This document shows, piece by piece, positions 1-60,053 of a stretch of 64,000 nucleotides of DNA. The notes under the pieces are model-generated. The model had not been told where the DNA came from, ran no database searches, and saw only the letters and a program-made list of their open reading frames with translations. Position 1 is the first letter of the stretch, and each line of letters begins with the position of its first letter. The translations under genes and the position numbers were made by a program. Source of the DNA: Lepidodermella squamata (taxonomy: Eukaryota; Animalia; Gastrotricha); assembly GCA_047495785.1 (NCBI GenBank), contig JBLDXI010000013.1:4650001-4714000 (forward strand), in the 5' to 3' direction.

Positions 1-95
1 ATTTGAGCACTGTCCGAAATTAGAGCGGAGAATTTAAGAATTTTGTAGTTTTTGTCAAAACGAAATTTTTTTATTGCAGATGATTAATTACTTGA

Positions 96-292: not shown

Positions 293-361
293 GATGGAGA
301 AACCGAAGAAATTTTCTTTATTTCAAAAGCTTTCCCTATCATCCAATTCATATCAACTAGA

Positions 362-1716
362 ATGAACAAGTTTTTGGTTGCAATTCTGCTATTAGTAAGT
401 TTCGTTAGCTGATAGGATTCAGTTGTAATGCAAAAATGACTTGATCCTCTTAGGCAACCGTATCAGTATGGACCTCGAGCGGCAACCCAACTGAGAGCCA
501 GGACGAGGCGAGCCGCCATAATGCATTTTACCGTACTAATCCAGGATCCGGTCGTGCTGAGGATGGCCATGGTTCTGGGAGCCCTGACGAGGCGAGCCGC
601 CATAATGCATTTTACCGTACTAATCCAGGATCCGGTCGTGCTGAGGATGGCCATGGTTCTGGGAGCCCTGACGAGGCGAGCCGCCATAATGCATTTTACC
701 GTACTAATCCAGGATCCGGTCGTGCTGAGGATGGCCATGGGTCTGGGAGCCCTGACGAGGCGAGCCGCCATAATGCATTTTACCGTACTAATCCAGGATC
801 CGGTCGTGCTGAGGATGGCCATGGGTCTGGGAGCCCTGACGAGGCGAGCCGCCATAATGCATTTTACCGTACTAATCCAGGATCCGGTCGTGCTGAGGAT
901 GGCCATGGGTCTGGGAGCCCTGACGAGACGAGCCGCCATAATGCATTTTACCGTACTAATCCAGGATCCGGTCGTGCTGAGGATGGCCATGGGTCTGGGA
1001 GCCCTGACGAGGCGAGCCGCCATAATGCATTTTACCGTACTAATCCAGGATCCGGTCGTGCTGAGGATGGCCATGGGTCTGGGAGCCCTGACGAGGCGAG
1101 CCGCCATAATGCATTTTACCGTACTAATCCAGGATCCGGTCGTGCTGAGGATGGCCATGGGTCTGGGAGCCCTGACGAGACGAGCCGCCATAATGCATTT
1201 TACCGTACTAATCCAGGATCCGGTCGTGCTGAGGATGGCCATGGGTCTGGGAGCCCTGACGAGGCGAGCCGCCATAATGCATTTTACCGTACTAATCCAG
1301 GATCCGGTCGTGCTGAGGATGGCCATGGGTCTGGGAGCCCTGACGAGGCGAGCCGCCATAATGCATTTTACCGTACTAATCCAGGATCCGGTCGTGCTGA
1401 GGATGGCCATGGGTCTGGGAGCCCTGACGAGACGAGCCGCCATAATGCATTTTACCGTACTAATCCAGGATCCGGTCGTGCTGAGGATGGCCATGGGTCT
1501 GGGAGCCCTGACGAGGCGAGCCGCCATAATGCATTTTACCGTACTAATCCAGGATCCGGTCGTGCTGAGGATGGCCATGGGTCTGGGAGCCCTGACGAGG
1601 CGAGCCGCCATAATGCATTTTACCGTACTAATCCAGGATCCGGTCGTGCTGAGGATGGCCATGGGTCTGGGAGCCCTGACGAGGCGAGCCGCCATAATGC
1701 ATTTTACCGTCCTTAA
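362..1716 (+). CDS. Secreted tandem-repeat peptide precursor, copy A (exons 362-394, 454-1716; 431 aa)
   Basis: ATG exon MNKFLVAILLL, then a 59-nt gtaagt...ttag intron, then ATVSVWTSSGNPTESQ, 14 x DEASRHNAFYRTNPGSGRAEDGHGSGSP and DEASRHNAFYRP*. The hydrophobic signal peptide and gene structure match 46813-47126 and 55989-56907. This frame is absent from the ORF track. Confidence 0.85.
502..1710 (+). repeat. 84-bp coding tandem repeat, about 14.4 units
   Basis: Near-identical 84-nt units. Variants are ggt/ggg (units 1-2) and gcg/acg (units 6, 9, 12). Confidence 0.98.
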
Positions 1717-2789
1717 ATCGCAATAGGCGAATGACAAGATTGAGGATTTGCGCGATAAATAACCAGGGCCACGATATAATTATGCTACTGAAATTTCGCT
1801 TTAAAAATACCACTGTGGAAGCATGATGTCAGTTCTTGCTTATATTGTAATTTGCTTGCTACATTTATTTTACGTTTGCAGGCGCGGGTAAATTTAAAAT
1901 TTGTCTTCAATTTATAACTATTTAGCGAGTGACTCGAATATAAAATATCAACAAACAATTTGCGGTGAGTAGTGTGCATCTTCAGAAAATATATCTTCAC
2001 ATTTCTGCATTCGCGACTTTGAACATTTTCAGGCGTAGTCGAGTAAGCTGCTTTTCATATCCGGTTTCTTAGGTTTCTTCACCTCACAATAGAAGTCCAG
2101 GTTCCAGGTAAAACAATTGTTGTCAATCGTTGAATGGCACATCCATATAATTCTCAGATTTTTTTAATTTCCTGATTACTGATTGCTGATTTTTCCGATA
2201 TGTCGATACTGAGTAGACTACATTGAGAGAGAGACGATTAGACTGCAGAATATCACAATTGCCTGCTAATGCAACTAATGCAACAATGGCCTGCTAATTC
2301 AGAGGGTTAACTCTGTATGGTGCGAATTCAGGGTTCACAACTAATTATTTTTACAGGCATGAATTCGGACCTTTTGGCAATTAATTAATAATTAATGCAT
2401 TTCTTAAACAAGTGTCAACATTCATCGATCATGCAGTTTTAAATTATTTATATTTTGAAATTCATGTACCTGGTTGTACCAGGCAGCAAGGTAACTGAAG
2501 TTTCGAGACCCTATTAGAGCAACCGGGGTCAGAGCATCTCTGTCCAGGACTACCCGGCAGCCACCGAGTTTCACCCGACGAAATAAACCAAAATTCATAT
2601 TTGCTTGCCATTCATACCATGCATAGAACTCTTCATAGAACTCTAGGCATAGTCGCGGCGACATCGCGGTCGGCCACTTAGCATGCACACCTGGCAGGTA
2701 AATGCGCACTAGTGCGACAGTCAAGGCCTACCTTCAACCTAGATTTTGAAGGTGTCGCCCATAGTTTTATCAGTTTCGAGGCTTGAAGA

Positions 2790-3060
2790 GGGCTGAGCTA
2801 GCCACTTTCCGAAGCCAGCTTTTTTCCAGCAATTAAGAAGAGTTTCAGAGCCGACTCGAAGCCAAGCTCGTTTAGCACGATGAATGGCGTCAAGCAAAGT
2901 CGTGGCAGGTAATGACGTGAACGGCTGATCAGGGTTGTCTTCAAGTCAGGCCAGCTGATAATTCAACTGAATAGCACGGTAATGACGTTTTAGAGATAGG
3001 ATGATCCCCTGATCGCAGGGCTGCATTTTTGCTGTGCAATTGGGCGGAAATCGGATAAGG
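2790..3060 (-). mobile_element. pogo/Tigger-like (DDE_1) transposase relic
   Basis: The minus strand reads LIRFPPNCTAKMQPCDQGIILSLKRHYRAIQLNYQLA*...LLDAIHRAKRAWLRVGSETLLNCWKKAGF. This matches the pogo/Tigger PPNxTxxxQPxDQGII and AWxxVxxxTIxNCWKKAG motifs, with an in-frame stop. Confidence 0.85.
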
Positions 3061-3414
3061 TTGGGTCAGTTTCTTTTCATAAAATAAGTAAGAAAATGAA
3101 AAAATGAATACGCAGGGAAAAAGGAAAAAACGAGTAGCGAAATTTGTTTTGCACATTATGAAAATGCAGATGAAAAAAGGTGTACTCACCGCCATTCAAT
3201 GGATCCTGCGGCGTTATACATCCGCCATGCCTGTTTTCATTCCTCGCCTGCCCGACCCTGCTCAAACACAAGCCCCGAAAATCTCAGCACCACCGCACGA
3301 AAGGTTTTGTATACGAGCTGCCACGCCGTCGATGACGAATCCTCAACTTCATCGCCGAATCGTCGTGAAAATTTCAATCAATTACCGCCCGTTTCTTGCT
3401 ACGACGAAAATGTG

Positions 3415-3905
3415 AAAAGCGTAGGTTTTATCGCGATATTTAGGTGACCTTCGCTCATCACATCAAATCTAATGTGGACCGGTTTAGAGGCAGTCTCTCG
3501 CTCTAGACCCATCTCGAAAACAGCCATGTAGTACTGATGAATAGTCGCTGGCCCGGGCGGGAAAACGTCGAAAACATCGGCGATTTTAGCGGCAGCCTGG
3601 CTGAGTTTCGACAGCGTAGACCGGTCGAACTGAAATGGCTATGTTTGCAGGCACTCGGCTGTTGTCAGATAGCTTGAACCGAGCGCGCGTTTCGACACGA
3701 GAACCGGCGGGAATAGGAAGCGAACTCGGCGAGGCTCGCATTAGTCTTTTCCAGCCCATGATGCTTTTTGGTATGCTCTTAGAAGCGTTATACGGTAGTC
3801 GGCATCGTTGGTGGTTTGTGCACAGCCTTCGGCAACGATGAGGTGTTGCGTAATTCCACCGGGGTTGTTTCTGTCGCGGTGGGTTAGCTCGATCAGGAGG
3901 GTCTG
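3415..3905 (-). pseudogene. Degenerate inverted copy of the HYDIN exon that begins at 47792
   Basis: TLLIELTHRDRNNPGGI...VAEGCAQTTN, IPKSIMGWKRLMR and RARFKLSDNSRVPANIAISVRPV match 47792-48400, with frameshifts and deletions. Confidence 0.9.
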
Positions 3906-4019
3906 AAATGAAATATGGTCCAAGTTCAATGTTCACAATTGAGGGCTCATTTAACAAAATAGTCAATTATTTTCTTGCTGAAGTTGACAAGTCATCAAGT
4001 TATTTTTGCATAGACGACG

Positions 4020-4250
4020 GATGTATTTTTAGACTCTCAAGTAAACATGGAAAGAAGCCGGGTTAACAGAGGCGAAATGTACAGCGCTTCTCAGCTAGAA
4101 AAAGTGCATAAGCAAGTGCAAGTTTAAATTTCATATTTTTCTAGTCAAGAATAGGTACCTACAGTTAATACTGTAAATTCATCACTTGAATCTTGAGTAA
4201 ACTTTGAAAAGGACCGTAAGATAAGGGCTATGCGAGCTTTCTCATACAGC
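4020..4250 (+). other. Orphan copy of the precursor upstream region, with no peptide ORF following
   Basis: aagtaaacatggaaagaagccgggttaacagaggcgaaat...gaatcttgagtaaac matches the reverse complement of about 47500-47690 and partly positions 88-125. Confidence 0.7.
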
Positions 4251-5908
4251 ATTTAGAAATTATATTGGCATTAATAATTAACAATCGTTGGGTGACACGT
4301 AACATAATTCTCAGATTTTTTTTTATAATTTCCTGATAAAAGATTGCTGATTTTTCCCATGTCGATTAACCAGTATACACTGAATTGAAGTGACATTTAG
4401 ACTACAGAAATACCATATTACAATTCATAATGGGAAATGTTCTAGCTGTTCCAGTGGGAATTCATGAATAGCCTAATAGAAGTGAACTAATAGACTCAAG
4501 TGAACGATCTCAGACGAAAAATTCAAGCAGTGCTGATGATAAAAATAATGAGAAATTAGGTTAAAGAGCCGGTTGATATTGATGAAACCACTCGAGACTT
4601 GGCGAAAACTACTGCAGACTGAAAAAAATTAGAATAATAATGTTGGTCATATATTTACGTTTCACTATCATTTTGTTCGTTCGAGTGCAAATCAAAGTAG
4701 AATCGGGCCATTTATTAGGTCACGCGTCCTTTATTCAAACATTTTTTCGATCGATTTTTAAATTTCAGCTGATTTTTTTTTGTTTATTTTTACGCCGTCA
4801 TCTTTTTTCATCGCACATTCTTCTTAATATATTTTATCGATTTAGCTTGTGTATAGAAAATCGAAGTTTTGTTTTGGATTTCACAACCCTGCACAAAGAT
4901 CTGACATTATGGCCAACACACATAATACATACGAGTCTGGGCGGAAATAATTTACACAGGTGTACAAAACGATTTCCTACGGCGGTGTCCCTTCTGATCG
5001 AAAAAAACCCGCGCCAACAAAAAGTTGACTAAAAATTTCGCGCACGTTGAAGAAAAACAAGTAGAGACTCTCTGTTTTATATTTCAAATTTTTCGAGCGC
5101 AATTACGCTAAAAGCAGCTGCCACCTTCTACCTAGCCGAATATAAATAACCGTGTAATTTCGATGATCGAATTTCGAGGCATCTCTAAATCGAATGTAAT
5201 TTCGAAAGCAAATTTTCTCATCGATTTTTATATATAACTTGCAGGAGTTATTTCTTCATAGACTTAAGGGCAATTTTTTCGTCGTAGGTGCCGAAACTTG
5301 AAGTGGTTATACAAGTGATTGCGATTTATTATAATTTTTTCGCTTATATTTTCTGACGGAATATGTTTTTCGAATTTATAGCAGCAAAATTGCATTTATA
5401 GCTATATCATTAGATCACCCGGCAATAAACAGCGGTATAAACTTCCTAAAAATAGCATAAAAAGCGGCGACCTTCAATATAAAACAGACGACCCAATTTG
5501 CGATGCCGAGATTGCCGGCTATTGATATTACTATAAAACATTTGATAGATAGATGTCAGCCTTTCGCCCGGCCTAATTTGATTTGAGAGTATAGTATCGT
5601 AAAAATATTATCAAAAATCATCGGCTTGTTAAAAATTCGAAAAATCGAGTTGTGCTCGCATGCCGCCATTTTATATTCGATCTTTTTTCATCGTAGAAAT
5701 TTGTCTTATGCATATCAATTTTTTAATCGAATGAGACATGGCGACGATATAATTTTATTATAAAAAATCCTACGTGTACATCTCATGCCACCTGGAGTGT
5801 TTTCGGCTCAATAGCAGCATCATGTTTGATGTCATCGCCGGTACGTTTTTTTCGCCTCGTAGTAGTGTTATTGCGCGGAAACAGAGCGGAATGGCGCCTC
5901 ACGTATAA

Positions 5909-8900
5909 ATGTCCCTATTTCGCGCTCTAGATTCCGTGCTGCCATCGCTGATTGTCGCCGCGTCTCGCGCCAATAATTTGACGGTTCGCTCGGCTGCTGG
6001 CACGCTAGGCGTCGAACATGCCGAGACGCATACAGCCGGTTCGGATCCCGATCTCGAGGCCTCGGCGCAGGGCGTAGATTTGAAGTATTTCCTACTCGTC
6101 ATACCTTGCGTTTGGGCCATTTTCAGCAACATCGTTGTTATTATTACGATTTTTCGAACCGCGACGATTTTGAGATCGTTCGCCTACGTCATGATCAGCC
6201 TTTCACTTGTCGACCTCTGCTCGTCGCTTTTCGTTATTCCTTTCTCAATTTATTTTTTCGTAAGTTGAAATTTTATTGAAAATTTGAAATGGAATATATT
6301 TTTGAAATTTAAATTTTTTTGTGACCGAATATATAGCAAATACTGACATTTTTCCAATAATTTGAAAATCATTGATAGGTGGGGCAACCTGTAAGAAGTT
6401 GAACCGTTTATTTTAAATTTTAAATAATATTAACCTAAATTAAATTATATCCTCAAAGCAATGGCTTTTGTGCATGACATTCATTTTTATATTTACGATG
6501 TAGGCAAATCATATGCATTGGAAGCTTGGATACTCGTTATGTGTTCTATGGACAGCTGCCGATGTCATGTTTTGTACTGCCAGCATTTGCCACCACTGCG
6601 CTATTGCTCTTCATCGCTACCTTATGATTTCGAGCCCTCACGATTTTTCCGTCACAAATAACAATAAGGTAAAATAGGTTTTCTCAGAAAGAATTGTTAT
6701 AAAATTTTAGTAAAATTTAAAAAAAAATCAGCATTCATCTTTCATTTTTTTAATTTCTTAAATTCATATCAATCTTTTATTATTTTGATATTTTACGATA
6801 AATTTTGAGTGAATTTAACGGCTATTTTCAGATAATTTACCGGTTGATAGTGCCGGCTTGGTGCGTCAGTGCTTTCATCGCCTTGATCCTGGTGATCCGC
6901 GCCTCGATCGACCGCGAAATGATCTACGACGCCGAGCTGGAAGAGTGCGGCATCAACGACCGCAACTACGCCATTTACTCGTCGATCGTGTCATTTTTCA
7001 TACCCCTAACCATCATTGTTGTTGTTTCACTGCGCTCAATCGTTATACTACAACAAAGAATTGAAACTAAGCGGAAAACCCACTACGGCTCGAACAGGTC
7101 GCCGGCTACTACGACGACGAATGTCTCGAACAACGACATGGCCCGAACCCCGTCGTCGGACGATGCGCCGAAATTTCGGGTTACAAAACGAAGCGGGTTT
7201 TATCGATTCTTCTGGCGCGAGACCAGACACCAGCGCCGGTCGGACGACGACCTTGACAAGTCGGTAACCGGGCAGAATCGCATAATTTTCGCGTCCAAGC
7301 CGAGAAATCTGCTGAGAGCCGGGTCGAAAAAATCGTCACGTGACCACATTACTGATGCAAAGCCTGGCAACACGTTGTTTCGAGCCCTGGAGACTTTTAC
7401 GACGAAAACGCTAGCGGTGCATACGCCAAATTCTGAGGAGGCGCCGGTTAGCATAACCGGGGGTCTGTTTGGCCTGGGGCCGAGGTCGAAGAGCCGGCGG
7501 CATAACAGCAGCTGTGCGTTATTGTCGGTGGGCAGGCGAATTTCGGAAACGCCATCGCCGGTTAGCGCGGATGAAAAGTCGGGTTTGACCATGCTGATTC
7601 CGACGTCGAAAACGACGGAAATGTCGCAGATTCATCAAGAATCCGACAGCCGATCTGGGTCAAAGAAAAAAGGGTATAAATATTTCGAATTCGGCCAGTT
7701 GCGTTTTTTAGAGTGCTCGAAACCACACTGGAATGGAAAAATTCGGACCAATATTTAATTTTTAGGAATTTAAAAAAATTGCTGAAATCATCATTCATAC
7801 TTTTATCCATTCCGAAAGTTAATTTGAAAATTTACTTGAAATGTTGGCGCAGAAATTGCCTTATCCTTAACTATCATGGGTCAATGAAAGTTCGAAACTT
7901 AAAATGCCGAGCCGTATGAGAGTCCAACATTAGCCGCTAATTTTCCAAGTATATTCAAAACAATTTTCGATCACCCAGAAGTAGGTTAAAATGTTAGATA
8001 AATCGTAAATCGTCATCTCAAATTTCATAAATTTTTAAATTAAGACTGATTATAATTTGCTCTTCTAAAAGTAGTTTTACAACTTTTACGCATTTTCATT
8101 TTAGCTCAATAAGAGCATTAAAACACAAACGCTTTGTATGCCCAGCCCCTAGAAAATTGAAAATTCAAATTGAGAAGTAAATTTCCGTGGAACTAAGAAT
8201 TTAGAATTCGATTTTGTAATTAATATATTATTTTCATTTCTTTCACAGGAGCATAATAAAAAGTCGGAATAGGTCTATCGCGGCTGTTGAGCACGTGATA
8301 CGGCGAACAAAACGGGCCATGAGCAACGCCCATCAACTAACTATCCCTCCAATGATGGAAAACGTCTCAACATCAGACTTCGACGTGCTCGAAGTCGTCG
8401 ACTGTGAAGAGTCAATGTCACGTGTTACCGAAGAAATTGTTGACGAGTTGTCGCTGTCACGCTTCAACAGTTCGGTGGCGAGAAGCCGTGAGCTCGATAC
8501 GTGGTCGAGCGATTTCGCCGACTACGCCAACCCACCACCGCCTCGCTTCAGCTACGACACTATGATTTCGGTGACTAGTTCGGCGAAACATCAGCCGCGA
8601 GCGAGCCTGCAATATGCGACTAATTCACTGAAGCGGGACGAAACGCTCGAGTTGTCACTCGTCTCATTGCCCTATGCTGATGTTGAAACAGCTTCAATTG
8701 AATTGGGTAATTAATTACTTAAAATTTTCGAAATTAAATTTTGAATTTCAAAATTTCAAAATTTTAAAATATTTTAAAATTAATTTTAAAATTTATGAAT
8801 GTCAAATATTTTAACATTTTTACTTAATTGGTTTTCTGTTAACATTGACAGGGCGCTATCCAATCCATCAGCAGCCTCTTAGCATTACCGAAATCGCACC

Positions 8901-11239: not shown

Positions 11240-12065
11240 CGCTAATACTACGCCATTTTTCACTGCCGAAAATGAATCGAAATAAAAAATCATGATGTTT
11301 CATCGAAAACAACGCGTTTTATTGTTCCAAAATTATTCAATTCCTGTACTATTATTATTAGTATAATTATTGGTTATAATAATAGCGATATGGTACAAGA
11401 TATCGGTAAAAATGTTTGCAATTTTTTTACAAGCGTCCGGTCAAAACAATCAATTTGGAACAACGATTTCTGAAAAATTGAATCTGGTGCGTGATTTTTC
11501 TGGAGGACGAGTATGAGAGCCACGGATTTGACGCCCCTCGAAATGATATTGCGAAGACACTATATAAAAGAGGCAGTATTTTTCCCGACTTATTTTCAAA
11601 GTCGAAAGCGATGAAATTATAGCTGGAAACAAAACAGCAACAACAACAACAGAAATCGCCCAGATTTTCGTCAAATTTTCGGATATAAATAAAGAAAATT
11701 ATATTATAATAAAACGATGAGATTTTTGGCGCCACAAAATCGATACCACGAAGCTATATTATTATTACATGCTACGAAACGAGGTTAAACACTTGAGCAG
11801 CAGTTGTATAGCTTGTAAAAAGGAGATGAAGACTTGTAAATAAATAGCAAGTAGAAGAATATTCCCACAAAAGAAGAAGAAGAAGAGAACTCGTATCGAC
11901 TTCGAACAAGGCCACGACGCGAAATTTATCAAACAATTTAATTTTTTTGATTTGGTATAAAAAACGAAAGAATGTTGCGCATGCATCAAATTTGTCGGGC
12001 GGGGAGAGACTTGAGATTTTTTTGCGGCGATATTTTTGCCTGCGATAGAAGATAAAATGGGGCGG

Positions 12066-29420: not shown

Positions 29421-29602
29421 TCTTTTTGTAACAACAACAACATGACCTTGAAAATTTAAGAAAAATTTCAAAAAAGAGACAAGAATTTTAATTAGGCTTT
29501 TATTGCTTTCGTATATCCGATAATGAGCGGCTATAAGGCGTGCATAATAACACATCCGCGTTAATAAAAACACGTGTAGAAACAATTAAGGCTACATAGG
29601 TA

Positions 29603-29986: not shown

Positions 29987-30013
29987 ATTTGCGAAAATCT
30001 GTTCGGTAAATAA

Positions 30014-30313
30014 TTACGACGCTGGGGCGAAGCGGCGAGCAGCTGATCGAGAATTAGCCGGGCCGTTGCTTGAAAGGTCTCGAATAATCTCGGCAAGGGC
30101 CTCTGGGTCGACGCCGCGTTCGATCAACTGAACGCAAATGCTCAGAGTTTCGCGATCGAGCCCTGTTTGAAGAATCGTAGATAATTCGAACAGCAGATCT
30201 AGCGCTTGGCGCCCAGCTAGACTGGCTGATTGGCTGGACTGAGAAGGCGGGTTTGTTCCGAATGAACGAGGAGCACCGGTAGCTTGGTTTTCTTGGTCCA
30301 GCTCAGCAGGCAT
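30014..30313 (-). CDS. MZT1: Mitotic-spindle organizing protein 1 (MOZART1/GIP)
   Basis: [43 protein letters not shown] is the MOZART1 signature. Confidence 0.92.
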
Positions 30314-31669: not shown

Positions 31670-31683
31670 TATGCCTAGGGAAC
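31670..31683 (+). promoter_or_regulatory. Possible RFX X-box upstream of HYDIN
   Basis: tatgcctagggaac matches GTTGCCTAGGNAAC at 12 of 14 positions, about 480 bp upstream of a ciliary gene. Confidence 0.3.
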
Positions 31684-32163
31684 CCGGGACCCTTTTGCGA
31701 CAAAAACTCTCGTCACGGAAGCTTCAGCTAATGTTTCGCGCCATGATTTAAAAAATGACTTTCAACAACAAATACTATTAATCATTACACTTAAATAACA
31801 TAAGTATTTTAATTCAAAAATCAAATATAAAATTTTAAGTAGCAACGTTTTCCCTCGTTACTATGCCCTGTCCTCACGCAAATCTCGCCGGCGTCATACA
31901 GGCCAACCAAGCATCGGCAAGCGGACCCAGGCCACTTACTGCTGAAGTATGAAGTCGTCAATATAAAACTCCGAAGATTGGATGGAAAGCTTATGTGTGT
32001 TAGATTTTACTTACAATGTGAGCGAAAGACACTCCACATTTTGTTTTGACCAGCATTTCTTCTCGTGTTTCTTATCCGACTCACCGAATCTTTTCCAAAT
32101 GCATTCAAATTTCACCTTATTGTTTAACAATTTGAATTTTACAACGGCTAGGTATATTATTAA

Positions 32164-44100: not shown

Positions 44101-47100
44101 TAAGAAGCAGATGGCATGAAAATTACTCACCCGCATGAAATTTTAGAAAAATCACGGAAAATTCAGAAAAAACTCGGCATTTTCCCCCTTTCATAAAAAT
44201 TGAAAAATTCGAGAAAACACAGTACCTGTAACTTGCATGAATTTTTATTAATTATTTGTGAATACATTTAATTTATTTTTCAATTCATTTATTTTAGGAA
44301 CAACTTCAACCGGGGCTGCTGCTGCGGGTAAGAAAGCCCGAGGAAGGGCGACTACCGTCTCGCCCCCACCTGGAGCTGATGGCGCCGATGGTACTATGAC
44401 TGGTGATTTGGAGGGCGGTGGAAATCGCGGTATCCCTGTCACAAATTTCAGGTGGATCATTCCGCCAAAAGGCGAAGCTGTGATGCGGTAAGTAAAGCCT
44501 AAAATGGTCAGAATTAGGAAAAAAAATGAATTAAATCGGAAATTTCAATTTTGAGTTTGTTCTTCGGAATTTGAAAATTTGAAAATCGAAACTTCAAAAT
44601 TCGAATTTAAATTATTGACATTTTTTTGATTGCTTTGAAAAATTCGGAAAATTGACAATTCAATTTTTTTAAATTTAAAAATTGATCTAATAATTCTATA
44701 AAATTTGTATTTTTTCTTCAGAATTCACTTCCATAGCGATGACACTGGCCAATTCGATCAAGTCTACAATTTCGAAATCATGGGCACATCCCGTAAATAC
44801 CAGCTATTCTTACGCGGAATCGCCTGTTTCCCAAGCATCTGCAAAGAACCACGCGTTCTATTCCCGAATCGCAAAAAGAACCGCGCCAAGGACGAAATCG
44901 TGTGTAAAAAGTACGTCATACAGGAGGAGCTATTCGACTTTGGCCCGTTGCTGATCGGTAAATCGCGCGATGGCTTCAAAGACGCAAGCCGTTTCCCTGA
45001 AAACAGTTCAACTTTCGTCATCATGAACAACAAATCAATCGACGCCGAATGTACTTTCTGCTTCTTAAACGACGCTAAGGGCGATATTTTCCTATTAAAT
45101 CCGCCTCAAATGACGTTGAAGCCGAACGAGCAGCAAGAGTTGAAGGTATGGGCCTTCCCGAGAACAGTCGGTGAATTTGAGGACACCCTGGTTTGCTGTG
45201 TCCGGGAGAACCCGGAGCCTGTTACGTGGAAGCTGCGCTGCTTTGGCGCTAGGCCTGAGCTAGAATTGGACAAGAAATTGCTGGCGTTCGAGAAAATTCT
45301 ACTTTTCCGAAAGGAGACAAAATCAGTCACCCTGCGTAATAAAACCTTGATACCAGTCGCGTGGAGGTTAACCGGCCTCGACGCCCTGGGTGACGATTTT
45401 TCAGTCGCCTCAGACTCCGGAATCATCCAGCCGCGATCTGAATACCAGCTTCATTTGCATTTCAAAGCATCCCGCCCTGTTATTTTACAGAAAAAGTACA
45501 TCCGCATCGAAATCTCTGATGCGGAAAACGTACTCGGCGTCATCCAAACCGAGTCGATTCAGGTCCAGGCCGAGTGTTACGACGTAGCCCTGGATTTGAT
45601 GTTCCCGAAAGAGCGGGGCGGTCAAGATTACTTGGATTTCGGGACGCTGCGGGTCAATGCGGAAGACAAGCAGCAGTTGACGTTGAAAAATCGCGGAAAA
45701 TACGAATTTCAGGTCCTTTTCGACCTAGTTCAACCCGAGGGCGTTAAAATGCCTGATGTTAAATCGCTGTTCCAAATCATCCCAGCGCATGAAACACTAC
45801 CGGCAACGGCTTCGAAGACAATAACCGTTGTTTTCTGCCCGAAACAAGAGGTCAAAATTTTGGATGCGCCGATAATTAAATGCTACATCAAGGAGCCAAG
45901 TCAACCGGAACAGAGCCAGAAAATCGGTGAAATTACGATCAAAGTCTCAGGCCGGTCGCTTTACTCGAAATACCGCCTAACCCCATCGACTGATATCAAT
46001 TTTGGCACGTTGTTGGTCAACGCAAGGAAATCAACGAAATTCACGATTGAAAATACGGGCGAATTCGAGTTTAAATACACGATTTTTTCGGTGTCGCCCA
46101 AGGCGCCGGCTGATGCGAATAAACAGGCGGCGAATGCGGCGCAAAAAGCTGGCCGGGGCCTGGCGTCGCGTGTTTCGTCGCGAAGTATCAAAGATGGAAC
46201 GGTGACTGGCAGTGTTCAGGCGATTGATAAGTCGCAGTTGATAACTCAGACGAGATTGGCCGTGGATATGTTCACGATTGCGCCTGGTTTCACGTCGACG
46301 CCGATTCCGCCGAATTCTTACCAGGAAATCACTGTCGAGTGCCTGGCTGACCGGGAGGGAAAATCTGAAACGGTTTGTGCTGCTTGAATTTTAAAATGGC
46401 AAATTCATTTTGATTAGTGAAGTCATCATTCATAGTTGTAGCCGGTTTAAATTGAATTAGCTTGACGCTCAACATTGGAAAGAAGCATCAGATCGCTCTT
46501 GTGATGAATGTGATCTTTGCTGATTTTGAGTCATGGATACCTTGAATGGTTTCCACCTTTTTTCGACAATCTCTGTAAATTTCGCGCAAACTTGAACGCG
46601 GTAAATTTCACTTTACGAGATGCACACGGCAAGCATTTTACTGAAATACTATATTCACTCGGATCATAGGTCATAGGTATATTGAATATTTCCCAACACC
46701 ATCAAACATGATAAGCTTGGCGAAAATTCCTGACTCTAAAACCCCACTCTGGTTTCCTCAAAGCGAGAGTTAATAGCCGTACTCATTATTTCATGCAAGG
46801 CTTGCTCCATATTTAACGGCCTCCTTTAATGTTTCCTTTAATGGCCAACTGGGGGTTATCAGGGCTACCGTCGAGTAAGAGACGGGCTGAGGGTTCCTCG
46901 AGTGAGAGCCTTGCAGAGGGTTCATCGATCGAGAGACGGGCAGTGGGTTCCTCGAGTGAGAGCCTTGCAGAGGGTGCATTCCAAGCGGCCCGGATGGAGC
47001 TTGCTGGATTAGCGCTCCACACTGCTACTGCTGCCTGAGAGTATCAAGTAGTTTTTGCATTCGAACTGAGCCCTATCAGCTAAAGAAACTTACTATAAGC

Positions 47101-50100
47101 AGCATTGCATCCAAGACCTTGTTCATTCTACTAGAAGTGGGTAAACGGGAAATAATATTTTAGATAATGAAGCATGCATAGCATACCTCCTAATTTATAG
47201 GCCGAGCCGATTCAACTTTGCATCTGTATAAACTTTTCAGATATCTCCCGTGAAATTCACGTTTCGTTCATGTGAAATCAACAAGGGGTGAAACGGAAGG
47301 CTTAGCGTCAGTTAGCATACTATTTACATTTTACATTGTCAAATTATCTGACGCAAAACAATTCTCTTGACCTTTTCGAACTCAAAATAATTGCTGTAAA
47401 ACAAATTCTTCTTAATTATTTAAGTGCATGTAAATTATATACGAAAATTAGAAATATAATGATCATGCTTATAACATTTTCTCAAAATTTTGAGCGTTTA
47501 CTTCCGTTATCATACGGCTCCTTTCAATGTTTACTCAAGATTCTTGTAAAAAATTTCTTCCTGACTAGAAACGTTCTACTTGCGTTGCTTATGCGCGTTT
47601 TTCGCACTGAGAAGCGCGATATATTTCGCCTCTGTTAACCCAGCTCCTTTCAATATTTACTTAAGGGTCTGATAATACATCCGCTGTAAGTCTCTGCCGT
47701 TGATGACAATATGCTTATGCATGTACAAAATTGATAATTAAATTAATTTTTAATTGTGAACTTTGAACTTAGACAATTTTTTCCATTTCAGACCCTCCTG
47801 ATCGAGATAACCGACCGCGACCCTGGCAACAACCCCGGCGGTATCCCGTACCGCCTCGTTGCCGAAGGCTGTGCGCCAACCATCAACAATTCCGACTACC
47901 GGGACGTTTTCGAAGAGCACACAATCATCAAAAGCATCATGGGCTGGCAGAGCCTACTGCGGCCGCACATGGGCCTCGCCGAGTTCGTCGGCGGCGTGTT
48001 CGGCGAGAGCGAGAAACGCTTCGTATTCCCGCCGGTTCTCGTCTCGAAACGCGCGACAGCTCGGTTCAAGCTATCAAACAACAGCCGAGTGCCGTCAGAC
48101 ATCGCCATCGCAGTTCGGCCGGTCTCAATGACGCAAACCACGTCGTCGAAGCACAGTCAGGCCGCCGCAGCCGCTGCCGCGAAAATCGTCGATGTTTTCG
48201 ACGTCTCCCCCGCCCGGGCTCAGATCCCACCGAAAGGCAGCGTCTACGTCGACGTTTCATTCAGCCCAGCGGCTATTCATCAGTACATGGCTGTGTTCGA
48301 GGCGGGTCTCGAGGGGGCGAATGCCGCTAAATCCGTCCCACTTAAATTCGATATAATGGGCGAAGGTCACCTGCCGCGAGTCTCAGTGATAAAACCGACG
48401 ATTTTGAATAAACGAGGCCAACCCGCCTTAATTTTCCGCCGGACGCTGCTAGGGTGTTCAGACGAGGCGACGTTCGAGTTGTCTAACGACGGGACTCTAC
48501 CATCGAAAGTCACGATCGATATAACCGACCCAGTCTCGTGTTTCCGGGTCGAATCCCTCCAACCGACCCCGTTGGAAATTACCGAAATCACCGATGATTC
48601 ACCCCCAGTTACAGCCCTGAAGACTAAAGCGATAACTGAGACAGTCTTAGTCGGAAAAACAGCGTTGTATAAGGTGATTTTCTCGCCAACCAGCGCTGTT
48701 CGTTCGATAGGCGGGGTGCGAATTCGTGTTGAAGATAACCCGTACGAAGACACGGTTATCCAGCTGATCGGCGAGTCCTACGACGAGCCGGTTTCACTCG
48801 CGAATGTTCGCAGCGCCCTAGGCATCACCGACGCGCCGCCGCCCCCGCCGCCGCCACCTGCGCCGGGTGATAAAAACGCCGCGGCGGCGGCTGCGGCAGC
48901 GAACCAGGCCAACTCGGCGCTGCGTGAAATCGACGAGCGTTCGGAGCCTGTCCGGAACCAGGTCATGAATTTCGGCGACACAAAACTCAACGAACCGTCG
49001 ACTCTAACGTTTGATATCGTCAACAAATCTGACCAGTTCATTCGATTCGTCTGCCCGGACCATCCGCATTTGAAATTTTCGCCCCATATCGGGCATATTG
49101 CGCCGAAAAAATCGAAAGAAATCAGCGTGACGCTGTACGTCGAACAGCCGGTCACGCATCGTGAGGTCGTAGTACCGATCAAATTTTCGCGAATTGTCCC
49201 CGAAAATGCGGACTTGTCGCTAGATTGGGATGATAAGAAAAAGCTGGTTCGCTGGGTCGAATCAACCGCGGCCCGGGTCCCGGGTGCGAAGCGTAAGGTC
49301 ACCGAAGCGGAACCTGAACCGCCGTACAGCGACGTACCTGAGAGTAATAAAAACCTTGACCTCCGCGTATCGGCTATCGTCCAATACGCGAAAATTAAGT
49401 GTGAGACGAAGCAGATTCATTTCAAGGACACCCTGATGTTCCAAACCCGGGTTGTTGAGGTCAAGGTGTCTAATGCGGGTGACGTGCGGGCGCATTACAA
49501 CTGGGTACTTGACCTACCCTCCCGGCCAGCTACCGACCCGGCTGAGATAATGCCAATGTCGCGACCTGTGACCCCGAGTATCATGACCCCGCGACCTTTC
49601 AGCGGAAATCGGTTCTTTTTAGACGTCAACGGAGCTGCGGCGATTGAGACACCCTGGACGGCTCTTGACATGTCGACACCTTCGTATGACCCGTTTGTTG
49701 TCGAACCACCGTTCGGGAGTATTGAACCGAATCAGAGCCAGGTGTTTAAAATCAAATTCGCCCCGCTTGACCTGGGCGATATTTCCGGAAATATCCAACT
49801 CCATGTGTCAAACGCGAATCCTGAAAACAGAATTTTCCACACTATCGCGGTTAAGGCGAGGAGTTTACTGCCGTGGTGTCACTTCGAGTTACCAGATTCT
49901 GAGTATTTAGTCAAGCGGAACGTTGAGCTACCCGGGCCCCAGGGTCGACCGCCCGGCACCAAGCTGGACCCTAACACCCGGGCGATTGAGTTCAGCGTAG
50001 TCGGGGTCGGACTTACTACAACGAAAATTTTCTCGGTTTTGAACCCGACGAATAAACGGTACCACTTCGAATGGGTCAACGACGATATGGATGACCCGAA

Positions 50101-53100
50101 ACGGGTGCCTTGTGTCACCTGCCGCACCCCACATGGCATCATCGGGCCGGGTGAAAAGGTCCATATGCAGTTCGATTTCGTGTCGAATGGCATTGGGCTA
50201 TTTGAATCTTTCTGGAACTTCGCGATTCGGGAATTGAACATCATTGTCCCGTTCGTAGTCGTGGGTGAGGTCGCGGATCCTCGGGTGATTTTCGCTCAGA
50301 CCCAGGTTAACTTCAAAAACATGTTGGTCGGTTATGAGGCGAATGAAACCGTTGAATTGGTCAATATGGAAACCGCCCCGTTGGCTTTCACCGTCGATCC
50401 GAATACTGTCTTCACGCAAGGCTTCGCTGCGAAATTGGAGGTCGACCCCATGAGTGGGACGATCCCGGGCAAGGGTGTTGTGCCGATCAGGGTGACGTAT
50501 CGCCCGGCATCTGAAATGGCGGTCAACTTCAATGTTTCGGTGAAAATCGAGCATAAAGTTATGCCGGTCACGCTCAATGTTAAAGCTGAAGGCTTCACGA
50601 TGCATGCGCTCGCGGCGGTTATCGATAATGCTGGAAATCGAACCGAACTCACGACGAAAGGCATCACTCAGGTCTGAAATTTTTCCAAAATATTTCTTTA
50701 AATTTTTTAGAATTTAATTTAATTTTAAATTTTAAATTTTGAATTTCAATTTATTTTCAAAAATTATCCGAAAAGAAATTTTAAATTTTCCTAGAACTTT
50801 GAGACAATTTTCAAATTTTTGGAGAAATTTTCATTAATTTTTGGAAATGTAATTTTTTTATAACTTTCTAGGTCAATTTTATGGAAGTTCAAATCAACGA
50901 GAAGGCCGTTCGAACCGTTTCGATCGTCAACAACGGAAAATTCAACTTCGCCTACCGCTGGGACACGAATTTCCCGAAAGTTTTCGCCGACGCCCTCACA
51001 GTTGAGCCCGCCGAGGGCATTATTCTAGCCCAGGGCAAGGGCGAGTGTCTCGTCAAATTTTGCCCGCGCCAGAAAATGGCCCTTCAAAAATGCGAAGCGC
51101 GCCTCGTTGTAGTCGACGGGCCGTCATTTGGCGTTCACTTCAGCGGATCAGCCCGCGAGCCCGGGCTCCACTTTTCGTTCATCGAACACGATTTCGGACC
51201 GTCCTTCGTGTTCAAACCCGGCCTTCCGCCTAAAACAGCCACGTTGACAATCACAAATCGCGATCAACGTGAGCATAGCCTCGAATGCCTCTACCAAACG
51301 ACACCGCATTTGGTACATAACATGGAGCAAGTCTACCTGGTAAAACCCGACCAAACGGTAGATATCGTTTTCAACTTCTACCCGCGCGAGGTTAGGAAGT
51401 ACACGGAGAAAATTGTCTTTGAAATGAACGGAATCAGCCAGCAAGTTGTGACCATCCGCGGCTCGGGCAGTGAGTTCAGCCTAGTCTGCGCCAACCCGAA
51501 GCAACGCCTCGTCAAATTAGGCGCGCTTAAAACCGGCGATTCAGTCAAGCGTGTCGTTCCGATAATCAATCAAACTTCGGTTGATTTGAAGTTTAAACTC
51601 AATCTAATCCCATCTAACGCGTTGTTGAAGAATTATTTGAGCCTAGACACGAAGAGTAAGAGCCTAGAGTTGGTTTTGAAGCCTCGCGAACAGCATAACG
51701 TTGAGGTTTCATTCTCGCCGCATAGCAGGGTGCCTCAATTTACGGAAGAGGTCGTGGCTGAGTGCATCGGAATCACGCAGCCGATTTTCGCCGTAACCGG
51801 GTGTTGCCAGGCTGTTGAAGTCTCGCTAGACATGGAGTACATTTCATTCGGCGCTGTGGTACTAAGATCCCAAGCTTCGCGGCGTGTCCTAATGCAGAAT
51901 AACGGCGATATCGGGGCGAAATTTGAATGGGAACAGGGAAAATTCTCGCCGAATTTTACCATGTCGCCCATGTCCGGGTATTTGACCCCGGGTATGTCTG
52001 TTGAGTTGGAAGTCACCTACCACCCGACTTCAACCACCTTGGAATGCCGAGTTGATAAGGCGAAGTGTATCGTCGAAGGTATGAAAAAGCCGTTGTCTAT
52101 GACGCTAACTGGTAGTTGCGTTCAAATGCCTGTCCCTCAACGTGAATCTATCCATTTTTCGACGGTTGTTCGACAAAAGGAGACTAAGCCGTTGCTAATC
52201 GGAAACCGGACCAATCAACTATGGACGCTGAGGCCTGTTATCGAGGGTGAGTACTTCAGCGGCCCGGAGCTGGTGGTTGTCGAGCCGCAGCAGAATAAGT
52301 CGTTTGAAGTCAGCTATCAGCCGCTGACCATGACAACCGAGGGCAAGAAGCATACCGGGTCGATATTTTTCGCCACCCCAGACGGCCAGGGTCTGTTGTA
52401 CACCGTTACCGGGTCGGCTGATCCGCCTAAGGTGTCTGGTCGGATCCAGCGGGAGGTTCCGTTCAAAACTCAATATGTCGAAGTGCTGCAGGTTGAGAAT
52501 TGGTTGAAGCGGCCGCAGAGGTTTAAGATGAAGATGGAACCGATAAAGCCGGATAAATTGGACCCGGGTACGACAATCAAGGGCTTGGACTACATCGATG
52601 TGCCGGGTCTGGTGAAGAAGGACTACCGTCTCACGTTTTTCGCGTACAAGGAAGCGACTTACCTGGTCAAGGTAAGCGCAATTATTCTGAATTTTACGAT
52701 TTGTTAAGGTCTAAAATTGAGCAAAATGAGAAATCCAACATGCATTGGATTGAATTAAACATGTAGAAAATAAAAAATCAAAAGGATTCAAAAAAGGATC
52801 AATCTAGGATTTAAGTCACACTCGTTATCGGGATTCCAAAATTAGATCAAAGAGATCAAAAATAGCGAACTTGTCTTAATTTTTGAAAAATCGATGAATT
52901 TTCAGCAGATATTAAATGGAACAGAAACAAGAAAATGTGAAAATTTGGGAAAAATTCCAATTATTCCTAAAAATTACGCCAACATTTGGGATTTTCATAA
53001 AAATTTTCAAATTTCGAACTTTTCAAATAAATTTAATTGAATGTTTAATCCTATGATGTTGCAGCTAAAAAATGTCTAAATTTTCCTCTAGAAATATTTT

Positions 53101-54883
53101 TTTCACAATTTTGATGACCCGGAAGATATTAAAAAATCTCATGATTTTTCAATTTTTTGAAATTCCATTTCAAGTTTTGATTTTCATTCATAAGTGGTAG
53201 AGCTTCAAAATTCAATTTTTCCAATTTTTCAACTGTATTATTTTAATTTTAACTATACTTCAGGTCACTTTCATCAATGAAGAAACCGGCGAGTACCAAT
53301 TCTACGAGCTCCAGTTCAAATCGGTCCGAGGCTCCCCGCTCCAGACCATCCGCCTAACTACCCCAGTTCGCCTCGCAACTTTCCACTCACTCCTCCTCCA
53401 AAACCCACTCGCTAACGACGTCACTATGTCCGTAACAGCAACAGCCCAGGAACTTCAATTCCCGAGCCAGTTGACGTTGCCAGCCAAAAGCGAGGGAAAA
53501 CTGACGCTGGAGTACAAGCCATTGAAAGTCGGCGAGGTTCGCGGCAAACTAGAATTGTCGCACCCTGAACTTGGCGCCTACGTCTACGACCTGGTTCTCA
53601 ACGCAATAACGCCAGCGCCTGAGAAGCAGCTTGTTTTCACGACCAGTCTCGGCCAGTCTCAGGTTCAGCAGGCCGTTTTTCTGAATTTCGCGAAACAAAA
53701 AACGGAATATTCATGCAAAATCGAACACGCTGATTTCCACGTCGATAAAACGGTATCAGCAGCTGCGAGTACGCAGAACGCTGGTACGGAGGTTAGCATC
53801 GATGTGACATATGAGCCGAGCCAGCAGGGCGAAGTTCGAACGCAGATGTTGGTTTCATCGACGGTGGGCGGCGATTACGTGTTCCCGATTGTGGCGACCT
53901 GCACGCCGCCTAAGCCGCAGGGGCCGTTTGTAGTGTCGGCCGGCAGCCAGACGGCGATCATTTTCCGCAATGTTTTCCATCAGTCGGTCACGTTCAGCTT
54001 CCACGTTGACAATCCGCTGTTCCACGTGGCGAAAGCGACGGAAACTGTTCGAGCCGGCAAAGACTGCAGGTAAACATAATTTTTTTGAGAACTTTTTTAT
54101 TTTTCTTTTCCTATCGAGTCGCGCTATTTCGGTAGAGGAAAATTCGGGGATTAAAACAATCAACCCCCCATATTTTTATGATATACGGTTGCGGAGATAT
54201 TCCAGTTAAAAGTTGGTCACGTGACCTTACCTGTTGTCACACCTGAGTGATTATCTCAAAAACGGTGATAGCTAGGTAGCCGCTCTCAAAGAAAAAGGTC
54301 ATCAGCGGGATGATATCTACTTTGAAACACATCCACATTGGTGACAGGTGATAATAATTTTTGCGAAATCCATTTTGATGGCATGAGATAACTCTAGGCT
54401 CGTCACACTTTTTTATTCACTCTCAAAAAATTTGTTTTTTTTTGTTTTGAAAAACCGTCTGGCTGAATTGAGAGGTTTCAATGCCCAAGAAAGAGCTATT
54501 TAATTTTCCGTTGGCCAGGGTACCAGAAAACTGTACAACAGTCCCAATTTATAGCTCAACTTATTTCGATAGTGTTGAAACAATTTTCTTTTATTTTTCA
54601 GGATAATGATTGGTTTCGACGGGGTACAAGATGGGTCGCCATCGACTGGAAAACTGGTCATCGCAACGTCCGCAACGCCCCCACCTGCGGGCCCAACCGG
54701 AGGCGGTTCGCAGTCTGAGCGAGCAGCCGCAGCCGCAGCTGCAGCCGCTGGTATGTTCCATCTTTATTGTTTCGAATTTTCCGACATTTATATTTCAATA
54801 TTTTTCCAGCTGCTGCCGCCGCAGCTCAACAGCAAGCGATCGGTGCCAACCAATGGGTCTACTACCTGAGAGGGGTGTCGTAA
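32164..54883 (+). CDS. HYDIN: HYDIN axonemal central-pair protein, about 13 coding exons, about 5300 aa
   Basis: N-terminus GFKSKV...LLDMGDTSYQRFS...FQPFPSEIYFQKYKPFETYEIPLLFRNND; many ASH/PapD-like Ig repeats; adenylate-kinase-like GPPKSGRST segment; C-terminus WVYYLRGVS*. The exons follow the ORFs at 32164, 37601, 40730, 41745, 42177, 43520, 44258, 44705, 47756, 50881, 53426 and 54606, plus 54810-54883. Confidence 0.95.
39058..39405 (-). CDS. Small nested antisense gene, BH3-only-like tail-anchored protein (exons 39405-39376, 39324-39058; 98 aa)
   Basis: MNDGQFSPIQ, then a 51-nt gtaatt...tttcag intron, then ILQEIGAEFRRIVDDFH... with a C-terminal hydrophobic tail IYVNFAIIVLYFLIKRLCK. Confidence 0.5.
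40209..40563. mobile_element. Tc1/mariner-type MITE-like element; related sequence at about 10644-10857
   Basis: Degenerate TIRs tatagcgtgtcccataac and ttctgggacacgctctgta with TA ends. The internal aaccggg..aaat.ccgaaaattaccgaacc...ttcttcggttaaatcgcg is shared with the last GPCR intron. Confidence 0.5.
46813..47126 (-). CDS. Secreted repeat-peptide precursor, copy B, nested antisense in a HYDIN intron (exons 47126-47094, 47034-46813; 84 aa)
   Basis: MNKVLDAMLLI, then a 59-nt gtaagt...tctcag intron, then AAVAVWSANPASSIRAAWNAPSARLSLEEPTARLSIDEPSARLSLEEPSARLLLDGSPDNPQLAIKGNIKGGR*. TATAAA lies at 47194-47199. Confidence 0.8.
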
Positions 54884-55227
54884 GGAAACATCCTGAAGGA
54901 AAACTTACCAACAAAATTGATCTCATTCATTATACTCCAACTGTGATATCATTTTTAATAACAAATCCATTCATTATAAATGATTTTATTGCAACGTATG
55001 TATTGCTTATAATCTTAGCGATTTTAAAATGATAGGTAACACTGCTTATGATTTTCTCTGAGCAACACGATACTGTGATTTTTGACTGATGGTATACTTA
55101 TACAAAGATCAAACAGGCGTCTGTCATTTGAAATATTCGTAATATATTTAAAATAAAGCAATTGCTTATCTATCCAGTAAAATGACCAGAAATGCGAACA
55201 CGTCTAATTTCTGTTTAAAATAATGCC

Positions 55228-55500
55228 TCATACGTCTTCTACTTTCCTGAACCTCAACCAGTCAGGTACAGTAAAATCGTCCAGGGAAAAGTTCTCAGTA
55301 GAGTTCGAGGAACAAGGCCTGTTAAGGAACTGACCGCCGATTCGGAACCAGTTCCGCCAGATTCAACATTATTGAGATACAGCACAAGCATTGAGATACA
55401 GCATAAGAGTCGCCAATCGACCGCCCAACTCCCTGTTTTCAACTTTCGAGGAGAAGTAGTCAGAATGAGGCCTGTAATGGCCTCCTATACCGTAATTTCC
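55228..55500 (-). pseudogene. Prolyl 4-hydroxylase alpha catalytic-domain remnant
   Basis: GNYGIGGHYRPHSDYF...GGRLATLMLYLN, then a duplicated tgctgtatctcaa (frameshift), LYLNNVESGG, and a deletion to WFRIGGQFLNRPC...KVEDV*. Confidence 0.85.
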
Positions 55501-55988
55501 ATCTTGGAATCAAGGTTTGTGTAGTTCAGTTTAACATACATAAACATAATTCGACGCTCAAAATTGAAAAGTAACCTATCAGATTGTTCTAATGATAAAT
55601 GTGCCACAAATAAGCGATGATAGTCTTGATTTTGAGTCATGAATAGCTTGAATGATTGAATAATTTCCCCACGTTTTCGACGATCTCTGAATTTTTCGCT
55701 GAAAATTTGAACGAAGGAAATTGAAGTTCACTTTGCAAGATGCCCACCACAAACTTTATTAAAATACCATTCACTCGGATCAATTCAATTGAATAATTTA
55801 CCAACACCATCAAACATGATATGCTAGGCACGAAATTCACGATTTTACGAAGTGGCTGACGCTAAAACCCCACACTGGTTTCTCTAAAGCTAACGTTGAT
55901 AAATATATATAGTACTCATTATTTCACGCAACGATTGCTCTCAGGTTTTCGTAATGCTCGTCCTCTATTGGCGGTCTTAAGGCGGTCC

Positions 55989-56907
55989 TCAGGGTACCTC
56001 GATGGAGAGACGAGCTGAGGGTTCCCCAACCGCGAGACGTGCTGAAGGTTCCTCGATGGAGAGACGAGCTGTGGGTTCCCCAACCGCGAGACGGGCTGAA
56101 GGTTCCTCAATCGAGAGACGAGCTGAGGGTTCCCCAACTGCTAGACGAGCTGAGGGTTCCCCAACCGCGAGACGGGCTGAAGGTTCCTCAATCGAGAGAC
56201 GAGCTGAGGGTTCCCCAACCGCGAGACGGGCTGAAGGTTCCCCAACCGCTAGACGAGCTGAGGGTTCCCCAACCGCGAGACGGGCTGAAGGTTCCTCGAT
56301 GGAGAGACGAGCTGTGGGTTCCCCAACCGCGAGACGGGCTGAAGGTTCCTCGATGGAGAGACGAGCTGTGGGTTCCCCAACCGCGAGACGGGCTGAAGGT
56401 TCCTCGATGGAGAGACGAGCTGAGGGTTCCCCAACCGCGAGACGTGCTGAAGGTTCCTCGATGGAGAGACGAGCTGTGGGTTCCCCAACCGCGAGACGGG
56501 CTGAAGGTTCCTCGATGGAGAGACGAGCTGTGGGTTCCCCAACCGCGAGACGGGCTGAAGGTTCCTCGATGGAGAGACGAGCTGTGGGTTCCCCAACCGC
56601 GAGACGGGCTGAAGGTTCCTCGATGGAGAGACGAGCTGTGGGTTCCCCAACCGCGAGACGGGCTGAAGGTTCCTCGATGGAGAGACGAGCTGAGGGTTCC
56701 CCAACCGCGAGACGGGCTGAAGGTTCCTCGATGGAGAGACGAGCTGAAGGTTCCTCAATCGAGAGACGAGCTGAGCCAGTTGGATTCGCGCTCGTGGACC
56801 ACACAGCTACTGCGGCCTGAGAAAATTACCTAGTTTTACAACAAAACATGAACCTATCACGGAATGAAACTTACTACTAGCAGCATTGAAACCAAACGCT
56901 TGTTCAT
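55989..56907 (-). CDS. Secreted repeat-peptide precursor, copy C (exons 56907-56875, 56816-55989; 286 aa)
   Basis: MNKRLVSMLLV, then a 58-nt gtaagt...tctcag intron, then AAVAVWSTSANPTG and 29 nine-residue units (S/T)ARL(SIE/AVG)EP. TATAAA lies at 56982-56987. Confidence 0.85.
55992..56774 (-). repeat. 27-bp coding tandem repeat, mostly alternating as 54-bp pairs
   Basis: The SARLSIEEP and SARLAVGEP/TARL units are visible in the DNA and in several open frames. Confidence 0.97.
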
Positions 56908-59988: not shown

Positions 59989-60053
59989 TGTAAAAACTTG
60001 ATAACCAGATTTTTGGAGTACTAATGGTTGATGAAATTGAGCACTATAAGTTT

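Follow-up and report, generated by a model that had tools for sequence, protein, structure and literature searches.

A lineage-restricted family of predicted secreted repeat-protein genes in the gastrotrich Lepidodermella squamata, with its source copy antisense in a HYDIN intron

Overview of the family

Our analysis of a 64,000-nt stretch of the Lepidodermella squamata genome (C13:4650001-4714000, hereafter the window; the assembly comprises 121 Mb in 151 contigs) points to a lineage-restricted family of secreted repeat proteins, three genes of which, A, B and C, lie in the window. Judged from their sequence, these three and two further loci, D and E, are real protein-coding genes, and the family was made by local segmental duplication from a copy that lies antisense in an intron of HYDIN. 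A TATA-type promoter would drive each gene; removal of a 58-62 nt phase-0 intron would join the 11-codon exon 1 to exon 2 and complete the signal peptide, which would be followed by a cysteine-free, acidic body made up almost entirely of tandem units. For the proteins with nine-residue units (B, C, D and E) we lean, with a probability of roughly 0.42, towards a function as whole repeat proteins; cutting of the same bodies into many small peptides comes second, nearly as probable.

A shared gene anatomy with different repeat arrays

Gene A is on the plus strand (all positions are those of the window unless a contig is named). Its promoter block (259-293) contains a CAGATG E-box (259-264) and a TATA-like box (286-293), and exon 1 (362-394) encodes MNKFLVAILLL, the first half of the signal peptide. 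A 59-nt phase-0 intron with in-frame stops (395-453, GTAAGT..TCTTAG) separates it from exon 2 (454-1716), which encodes the remainder of the signal, the linker NPTESQDEASR and 14 copies of a 28-residue unit (array 491-1710) before the stop. Tandem Repeats Finder describes the array as 84 nt x 14.5 with 99% matches. The 3′ flank (1717-2010) is homologous to those of B, C and A′, the positional allele of A.

B and C are encoded on the minus strand. In B, the promoter block with TATA-like box and CAGATG E-box (47192-47226) is followed by exon 1 (47094-47126, MNKVLDAMLLI), a 59-nt intron (47035-47093) and exon 2 (46813-47034), which holds the signal end, a linker, about four nine-residue units (27 nt x 3.9) and a 22-residue tail ending in KGGR before the stop. 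The DNA homologous to this tail is 3′ untranslated region in C, D and E, where it lies behind a frame-shifting indel and a common stop. C has the same arrangement of promoter block (56980-57014, TATA-like box and CAGATG E-box), exon 1 (56875-56907, MNKRLVSMLLV), a 58-nt intron (56817-56874) and exon 2 (55989-56816), with the signal end, an NPTGSAR linker, 28 nine-residue units and a cut last unit (array 56007-56774; 54 nt x 14.2) and the stop. Its 3′ flank (55755-55988) extends to an AATAAA hexamer 229 nt past the stop.

These recomputed gene models agree with the coordinates that a preliminary description of this DNA had given for A, B and C, and they reproduce what it had reported of their common promoter block, 11-codon exon 1, 58-59 nt phase-0 GT..AG intron, exon-2 start and 3′ flanks, as well as the number and length of the repeat units (28 residues x 14 in A; nine residues, about 4 in B and 29, the last one cut, in C). 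Its remark that the list of open reading frames (ORFs) misses the true frame of A holds as well: downstream of the splice acceptor the shared frame of A is free of ATG, GTG and TTG codons, which is why it is missed, and the listed ORF 521-1726 is in another frame.

The mean column identity in an alignment of A, B and C is 76% for the 5′ regions and 64% for the 3′ flanks, and paralogues are 76-88% identical in exon 1 and 63-85% in the intron. Common to the three 5′ regions are a CAGATG box with a TATA-like box some 27 nt beyond it, and AGAATGAACAAG at the start, and the introns follow the pattern GTAAGTTT..TGATAGG..TCTYAG. The exact 13-mer promoter word TATACAGATGCAA occurs genome-wide at family members only. 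With one mismatch allowed, its genome-wide frequency is about that of controls, so that there is no sign of a wider regulon.

The anatomy extends to every copy of the family. The ATG, the 33-nt exon 1, the GT..AG borders, phase 0 and an open exon 2 are retained in all nine copies, and reading through an unspliced intron runs into stops in each of them. A TATA-like box lies 73-97 nt upstream of every ATG, a CAGATG E-box 27 nt upstream of the TATA box in seven of the nine, and an AATAAA or AGTAAA hexamer 170-230 nt downstream of the stop in six. The intron motif TGATAGG (GGATAGG in E; 412-418 in A) is also kept in all nine copies, 17-23 nt into the intron. It gives two in-frame stops in eight of them, and in A, A′, B and its counterpart B′ it overlaps CTGAT, a branch-point-like sequence.

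The N-terminus has the features of a signal peptide throughout, as had been proposed. By heuristic criteria, all nine copies have a 12-residue hydrophobic core that spans the splice junction (mean hydropathy 2.5-3.2) and small residues at -3 and -1 ahead of a conserved NP (TSA/NP, SSG/NP). The predicted mature parts are cysteine-free with a pI of 4.7-6.4. We infer that the proteins enter the endoplasmic reticulum, lose the signal near TSA/NP and are secreted.

Nine copies at five loci, with large differences between haplotypes

Three different 5′ regions served as queries in DNA searches; together with a profile search in all six frames, these found nine copies and none elsewhere in the 121-Mb genome, so that the family is larger than the three genes first reported. 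Contig C13 carries D, 3.7 kb before the window, followed by A, B and C. Contig C74 carries D′, A′, B′ and C′ in the same order and spacing, and E 112 kb further, past the end of C13. The family thus consists of five loci, four of which have a second copy on C74. C74 is read as the other haplotype, because it matches C13 at 94-97% identity across kilobases of non-coding DNA and because a public run of genomic DNA, the only run retrieved with a 5.6-kb stretch over D and the 5′ end of A, contains both haplotype forms, among them the 2.2-kb deletion that C74 shows between D and A. Splice joints were absent from the reads of this run.

The two haplotypes differ in the number of nine-residue units at each locus present on both: 29 on C13 versus 46 on C74 for C, 5 versus 14 for D, and 3 versus 6 for B. 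At locus A the difference concerns the whole body of the protein. The C13 allele has the 14 units of 28 residues, a unit confined to this site in the genome. A′ has an identical exon 1 and an intron 95% identical to that of A; its exon 2 encodes only 30 more residues, ending in ..EASARRLAASGGW, which gives a 41-residue protein without the 28-residue array. The 99% identity of its units shows the array to be of very recent origin, and A itself is a young allele, specific to one haplotype, in which the array has replaced the body. The haplotypes are hyper-divergent around this locus (window 1-6000 versus C74:75.6-78.8 kb), with 70-86% identity and two 2-kb indels, compared with 94-97% elsewhere in the region.

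The repeat cargo is less swappable than the preliminary description had it: it differs even between the haplotypes at locus A, but B, C, D and E share variants of a single unit. In its strongest form, the idea is that of a cassette system, in which new repeat cargo arises and is exchanged, even between alleles, behind a conserved chassis of promoter, signal exon and intron. Locus A would then offer 14 copies of an amidated HNAFYRTNPGS-NH2 on one haplotype and a repeat-less 41-residue protein on the other, and the family would release Arg-delimited peptides that serve as rapidly evolving signals to the outside, such as pheromones or cues for settlement or defence. We consider this combination unlikely.

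A translated frame under selection

The unit common to B, C, D and E is L-x-hydrophobic-x-E-P-S/T-A-R. The 107 nine-residue units, pairs of which are not independent in the comparisons below, comprise 32 DNA variants but only 13 peptides, and the entropy at codon positions 1, 2 and 3 is 0.58, 0.23 and 1.22 bits. The synonymous share of single-base codon differences is 74% in the shared frame versus 12% and 2% in the other two frames. Leu is preserved through CTC, CTA, CTT and CTG, Pro and Ala through three codons each, and Arg through CGT and AGG. Based on this large contrast between frames, we take the shared frame to be translated and the unit to be under purifying selection.

These data also bear on the explanation that the loci are non-functional, being decaying duplicates or untranslated minisatellites that stay open only because their units lack stops. 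Arrays are indeed open in several frames and on both strands, A′ is down to 41 residues, with no match for the spliced protein in an exact look-up, and one duplicate has lost its gene entirely. However, a strong synonymous excess confined to the shared frame would not be expected of such sequences, nor would the retention of ATG, splice sites, phase and stop position in all nine copies when the promoters of paralogues are only 52-73% identical, and we regard this explanation as highly improbable for the family. A alone may be non-functional: its units have only two variant sites at 99% identity, so that it is the chassis that assigns its frame. The earlier view of the family is supported in this respect: its genes are real, code for protein, evolve fast and join a variable repeat cargo to a promoter, signal and intron that are conserved.

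Origin from a copy within HYDIN

A large HYDIN gene on the plus strand (32164-55353) occupies the middle of the window, and B lies antisense inside its 1.4-kb intron (46370-47791). The flanks of C, D and E hold copies of the HYDIN exon piece that adjoins B. So does a geneless relic on the plus strand (3415-4235), which combines this piece with a copy of the upstream flank of B and is the remnant of a family duplication. The presence of these exon relics marks the B locus as the source of the duplicates. Upstream of C, further HYDIN exon relics continue on the minus strand (57527-59259); they are copies of 47719-50078 and 54820-55353 with 87-97% identity, which shows C to have arisen as a segmental copy from the part of HYDIN that carries B.

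The only close relative that we found is a 38-kb animal contig from a metagenome in ENA (L032, ERZ23486787 scaffold_1016), whose HYDIN is 82% identical. The HYDIN exon of this relative runs continuously across the site of the B-hosting intron, and no family member is present in the 26 kb of its contig that were examined. This 2494-residue exon lacks three introns of the HYDIN gene in the window (about 44488-44717, 46370-47791 and 50698-50872). The best named matches of HYDIN are from molluscs (52-53%) and vertebrates (47-50%). A search of the assembly for COX1 gave no match.

No homologues found in proteins, metagenomes or RNA families

An exhaustive search of 1.84 billion representative proteins with a seven-member profile revealed no homologue; its matches are unrelated low-complexity proteins with a nine-residue period, none of which has the chassis. 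A word-based search with C exon 2 in 5.8 billion proteins returned a single match, a spurious one from a GC-rich off-frame ORF. A protein atlas gave no match at ≥ 0.9, Rfam gave none, two DNA pattern scans of metagenomes found nothing related, and a literature search with six peptide strings found no report. Among Pfam models, DUF6470 (PF20074, 178 positions) gave scores that grow with the repeat number (19.6, 43.5, 48 and 79 bits) without a whole-domain match. Every best stretch falls within model positions 1-65, so we read the score as an additive repeat artefact. The score of Glyco_hydr_30_2 (GH30_2) likewise grows with the repeat number and covers only a piece of the model, and this match was rejected, as was one to MF_alpha, as an additive or trivial repeat match. 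The peptides, which the preliminary description did not recognise, thus match no described protein family and no non-coding repeat in the proteins, Pfam, Rfam, metagenomes and literature searched. The family is newly described and lineage-private, but of a familiar kind, in which a tandem repeat comes after a signal peptide.

Intact repeat proteins or cleaved precursors

If the nine-residue-unit proteins act whole, each unit would form a short strand (L-x-hydrophobic) and a turn that contains Pro. An acidic rod or fibre would gain one turn with every two units, and its length would be reset by unequal crossing-over. Likely roles would be those of an extracellular coat, matrix or surface-binding protein. 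The conserved positions of the unit are two alternating hydrophobic residues and a Pro/Ala turn, a pattern for which a strand-turn repeat protein accounts at least as well as cleaved peptides do, and B, C and D have an 18-residue super-repeat in common. AlphaFold2 models C exon 2 as a beta-solenoid with one strand per unit (pLDDT 87, pTM 0.84), compared with a pLDDT of 44 for the antisense-frame translation of the same DNA. The top solved structure for the C model in VIA-align 2 is 3p4g, a Ca2+-dependent beta-helical antifreeze protein (Z 20.6, 2.9 Å, 248 residues); Foldseek returned nothing significant for it. The lack of a classical convertase context around the Arg of the nine-residue units also counts for intact proteins.

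Several observations weigh against whole repeat proteins. AlphaFold2 predicts beta-solenoids with confidence for 41% of perfect repeats of random sequence (PMC11795689), and the single control differs in composition from C; for both reasons the predicted solenoid is weak evidence. The proteins have no capping segments, and the short members with three to five units could hardly form a stable solenoid. The unit of A is rich in Gly, Ser, Asp and His and unlike a strand-turn module. In addition, the invariant boundary Arg, linkers that end in the same SAR context, the PGSGR of A and the KGGR end of B fit a cleaved polyprotein. Finally, the products of A to E are known here from their genes, through models that rest on sequence.

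In a polyprotein, once it has entered the secretory pathway, a protease of the trypsin-like or convertase type would cleave the body behind each Arg, possibly with carboxypeptidase trimming. Tens of near-identical acidic peptides of 8-9 residues would result, and from A an amidated, Gly-extended peptide; repeat number would set the dose, and the products could be pheromones, defence peptides or other extracellular signals. Every unit boundary has the Arg, which is preserved whether encoded by CGT or by AGG, and the linkers ahead of the repeats close in the same context (GSAR, PSAR, EASR). A has PGSGR with an Arg at P8, B ends in KGGR-stop, and the genome holds at least eight convertase P-domains and a strong PHM-type monooxygenase match. 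Lone Arg sites are used by real precursors (PMC7179676), and a signal exon followed by a tandem array that is cut at Arg or Lys has a precedent in the antifreeze glycoprotein genes of cod (PMC6410882). On the other hand, in the nine-residue units P2, P4, P6 and P8 are all non-basic, no basic residue lies within eight positions upstream of the Arg, P1′ is Leu or Phe, and a Gly as amide donor is absent. The classical rule asks for dibasic flanks, or for a monobasic site where P4, P6 or P8 is basic and P1′ is not aliphatic. Under the published rules for monobasic prohormone sites, those without an upstream basic residue and with such a P1′ are not known to be cut. Furthermore, the most conserved residues flank the supposed cut, leaving only three or four variable residues as cargo, and acidic, unmodified octapeptides are unusual among bioactive peptides. 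We therefore place the polyprotein second, as a serious but tentative alternative.

Because of this lone Arg without upstream basic residue, the Leu or Phe at P1′ and the missing Gly donor, the nine-residue units do not fit classical prohormone processing, and the suggestion that the genes are prohormone-type precursors is not borne out for them. Prohormone-like sequence is confined to PGSGR in A and KGGR-stop in the tail of B, and the only site that conforms to the rule is GSGR/A in A, with its Arg at P8. The gland- or neuron-secreted peptide system first proposed is a tentative reading, with the classical hallmarks missing at four of the five loci. A narrower version of the polyprotein, in which the genes encode classical neuronal or endocrine neuropeptide precursors acting on G-protein-coupled receptors (GPCRs), could draw on the HNAFYRTNPGS-Gly-Arg motif, repeated 14 times in A, and on the position of the E-box relative to the TATA box in most copies. 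However, A occurs on one haplotype only, with near-identical units, and A′ encodes its short protein without the motif; no site at the N-terminus of the proposed A peptide conforms to the rule, neither amidation nor dibasic sites occur at the other four loci, and no database searched contained a homologue. Neuropeptide precursors in this strict sense are improbable. Whole, rod-like repeat proteins thus remain the reading that we tentatively prefer for B, C, D and E.

Neighbouring genes and significance

A 1687-bp unit is repeated in tandem at the end of the window (59362-64000). Every copy contains a minus-strand ORF of 252 residues without a Pfam match, and the identity between copies and haplotypes is 97-99%. 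Between A and HYDIN (6805-29600), the plus strand contains a rhodopsin-type GPCR fragment and the minus strand ORFs with weak matches to Sushi, SUEL-lectin, PAN and CAP domains, most of them below the Pfam cut-off. The SUEL-lectin neighbour upstream of HYDIN is also found on the contig of the relative. At C13:1.99-2.36 Mb, at least 20 matches to Cu2_monoox_C (PHM/DBH-type copper monooxygenase family) are clustered in what looks like a large local expansion, and a strong PHM-like match is located on C12.

If expressed, the family would be a clean, datable case of the birth and diversification of a secreted repeat-protein family. The source copy is nested in a HYDIN intron, the duplicates still hold relics of the host exon, the two haplotypes of the genome differ in repeat number by as much as about threefold, and in one allele a new body has taken the place of the whole former one. 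Secreted repeat proteins confined to single lineages are common; what stands out here is the clear history of the family and the allelic difference at locus A. Deciding between polyprotein and intact rod would tell whether the animal makes peptides by a non-classical route.

Comparison with known systems

Among known repeat precursors, those of the apidaecin type in bees have a prepro region that is conserved and repeated peptide units whose number differs between genes and alleles; these units are cationic, Pro-rich and flanked by RR and dipeptidyl spacers, whereas the units described here are acidic with a lone Arg. Multi-copy neuropeptide precursors of the FMRFamide type (monobasic examples in PMC7179676) also have a signal followed by many tandem copies of a short peptide, and A and the tail of B share Gly-Arg ends with them. 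In contrast, the nine-residue units have neither dibasic sites, an upstream basic residue nor an amide donor; their P1′ is aliphatic, spacers are absent, and no orthologues were found. Fungal KEX2-processed repeat proteins and yeast alpha-factor (PMC9769878, PMC7329392) resemble the family as secreted, lineage-specific and fast-evolving precursors with repeated cores behind a signal. The likeness to fungal KEX2-type peptide precursors, which had been raised for this family, nevertheless fails at its defining feature, since no Lys-Arg or Arg-Arg separates the units, and the host is an animal.

For an intact protein, the closest comparison is with the Marinomonas region IV antifreeze protein (PDB 3p4g) and RTX beta-rolls, the latter being two-sheet solenoids. 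The AlphaFold2 model of C, which can be superposed on 3p4g, shares with it acidic turns and a length of about 18-19 residues for each turn. C differs in having no GGxGxD motif (the GGxGxDxUx consensus is absent) and an identity of only 13%, the unit proteins have no Pfam RTX match, and the model may be an AlphaFold2 repeat artefact.

The codfish and notothenioid antifreeze glycoprotein (AFGP) polyprotein genes have their signal on one or more small 5′ exons and a last exon with a short propeptide and a tandem array, in which lone Arg or Lys residues are proposed cleavage sites (PMC6410882). Their Thr-Ala/Pro-Ala unit is unlike the acidic nine-residue unit L-x-hydrophobic-x-E-P-S/T-A-R, no sequence homology was found, and we claim neither glycosylation nor ice binding for the present family. 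In their architecture, however, the two agree: like the AFGP genes, the genes described here carry the signal on a small 5′ exon and, in a large last exon, a short propeptide with a long array grown from a short unit, their repeat number varies widely from copy to copy, and they contain a TATA box and belong to a local multigene family.

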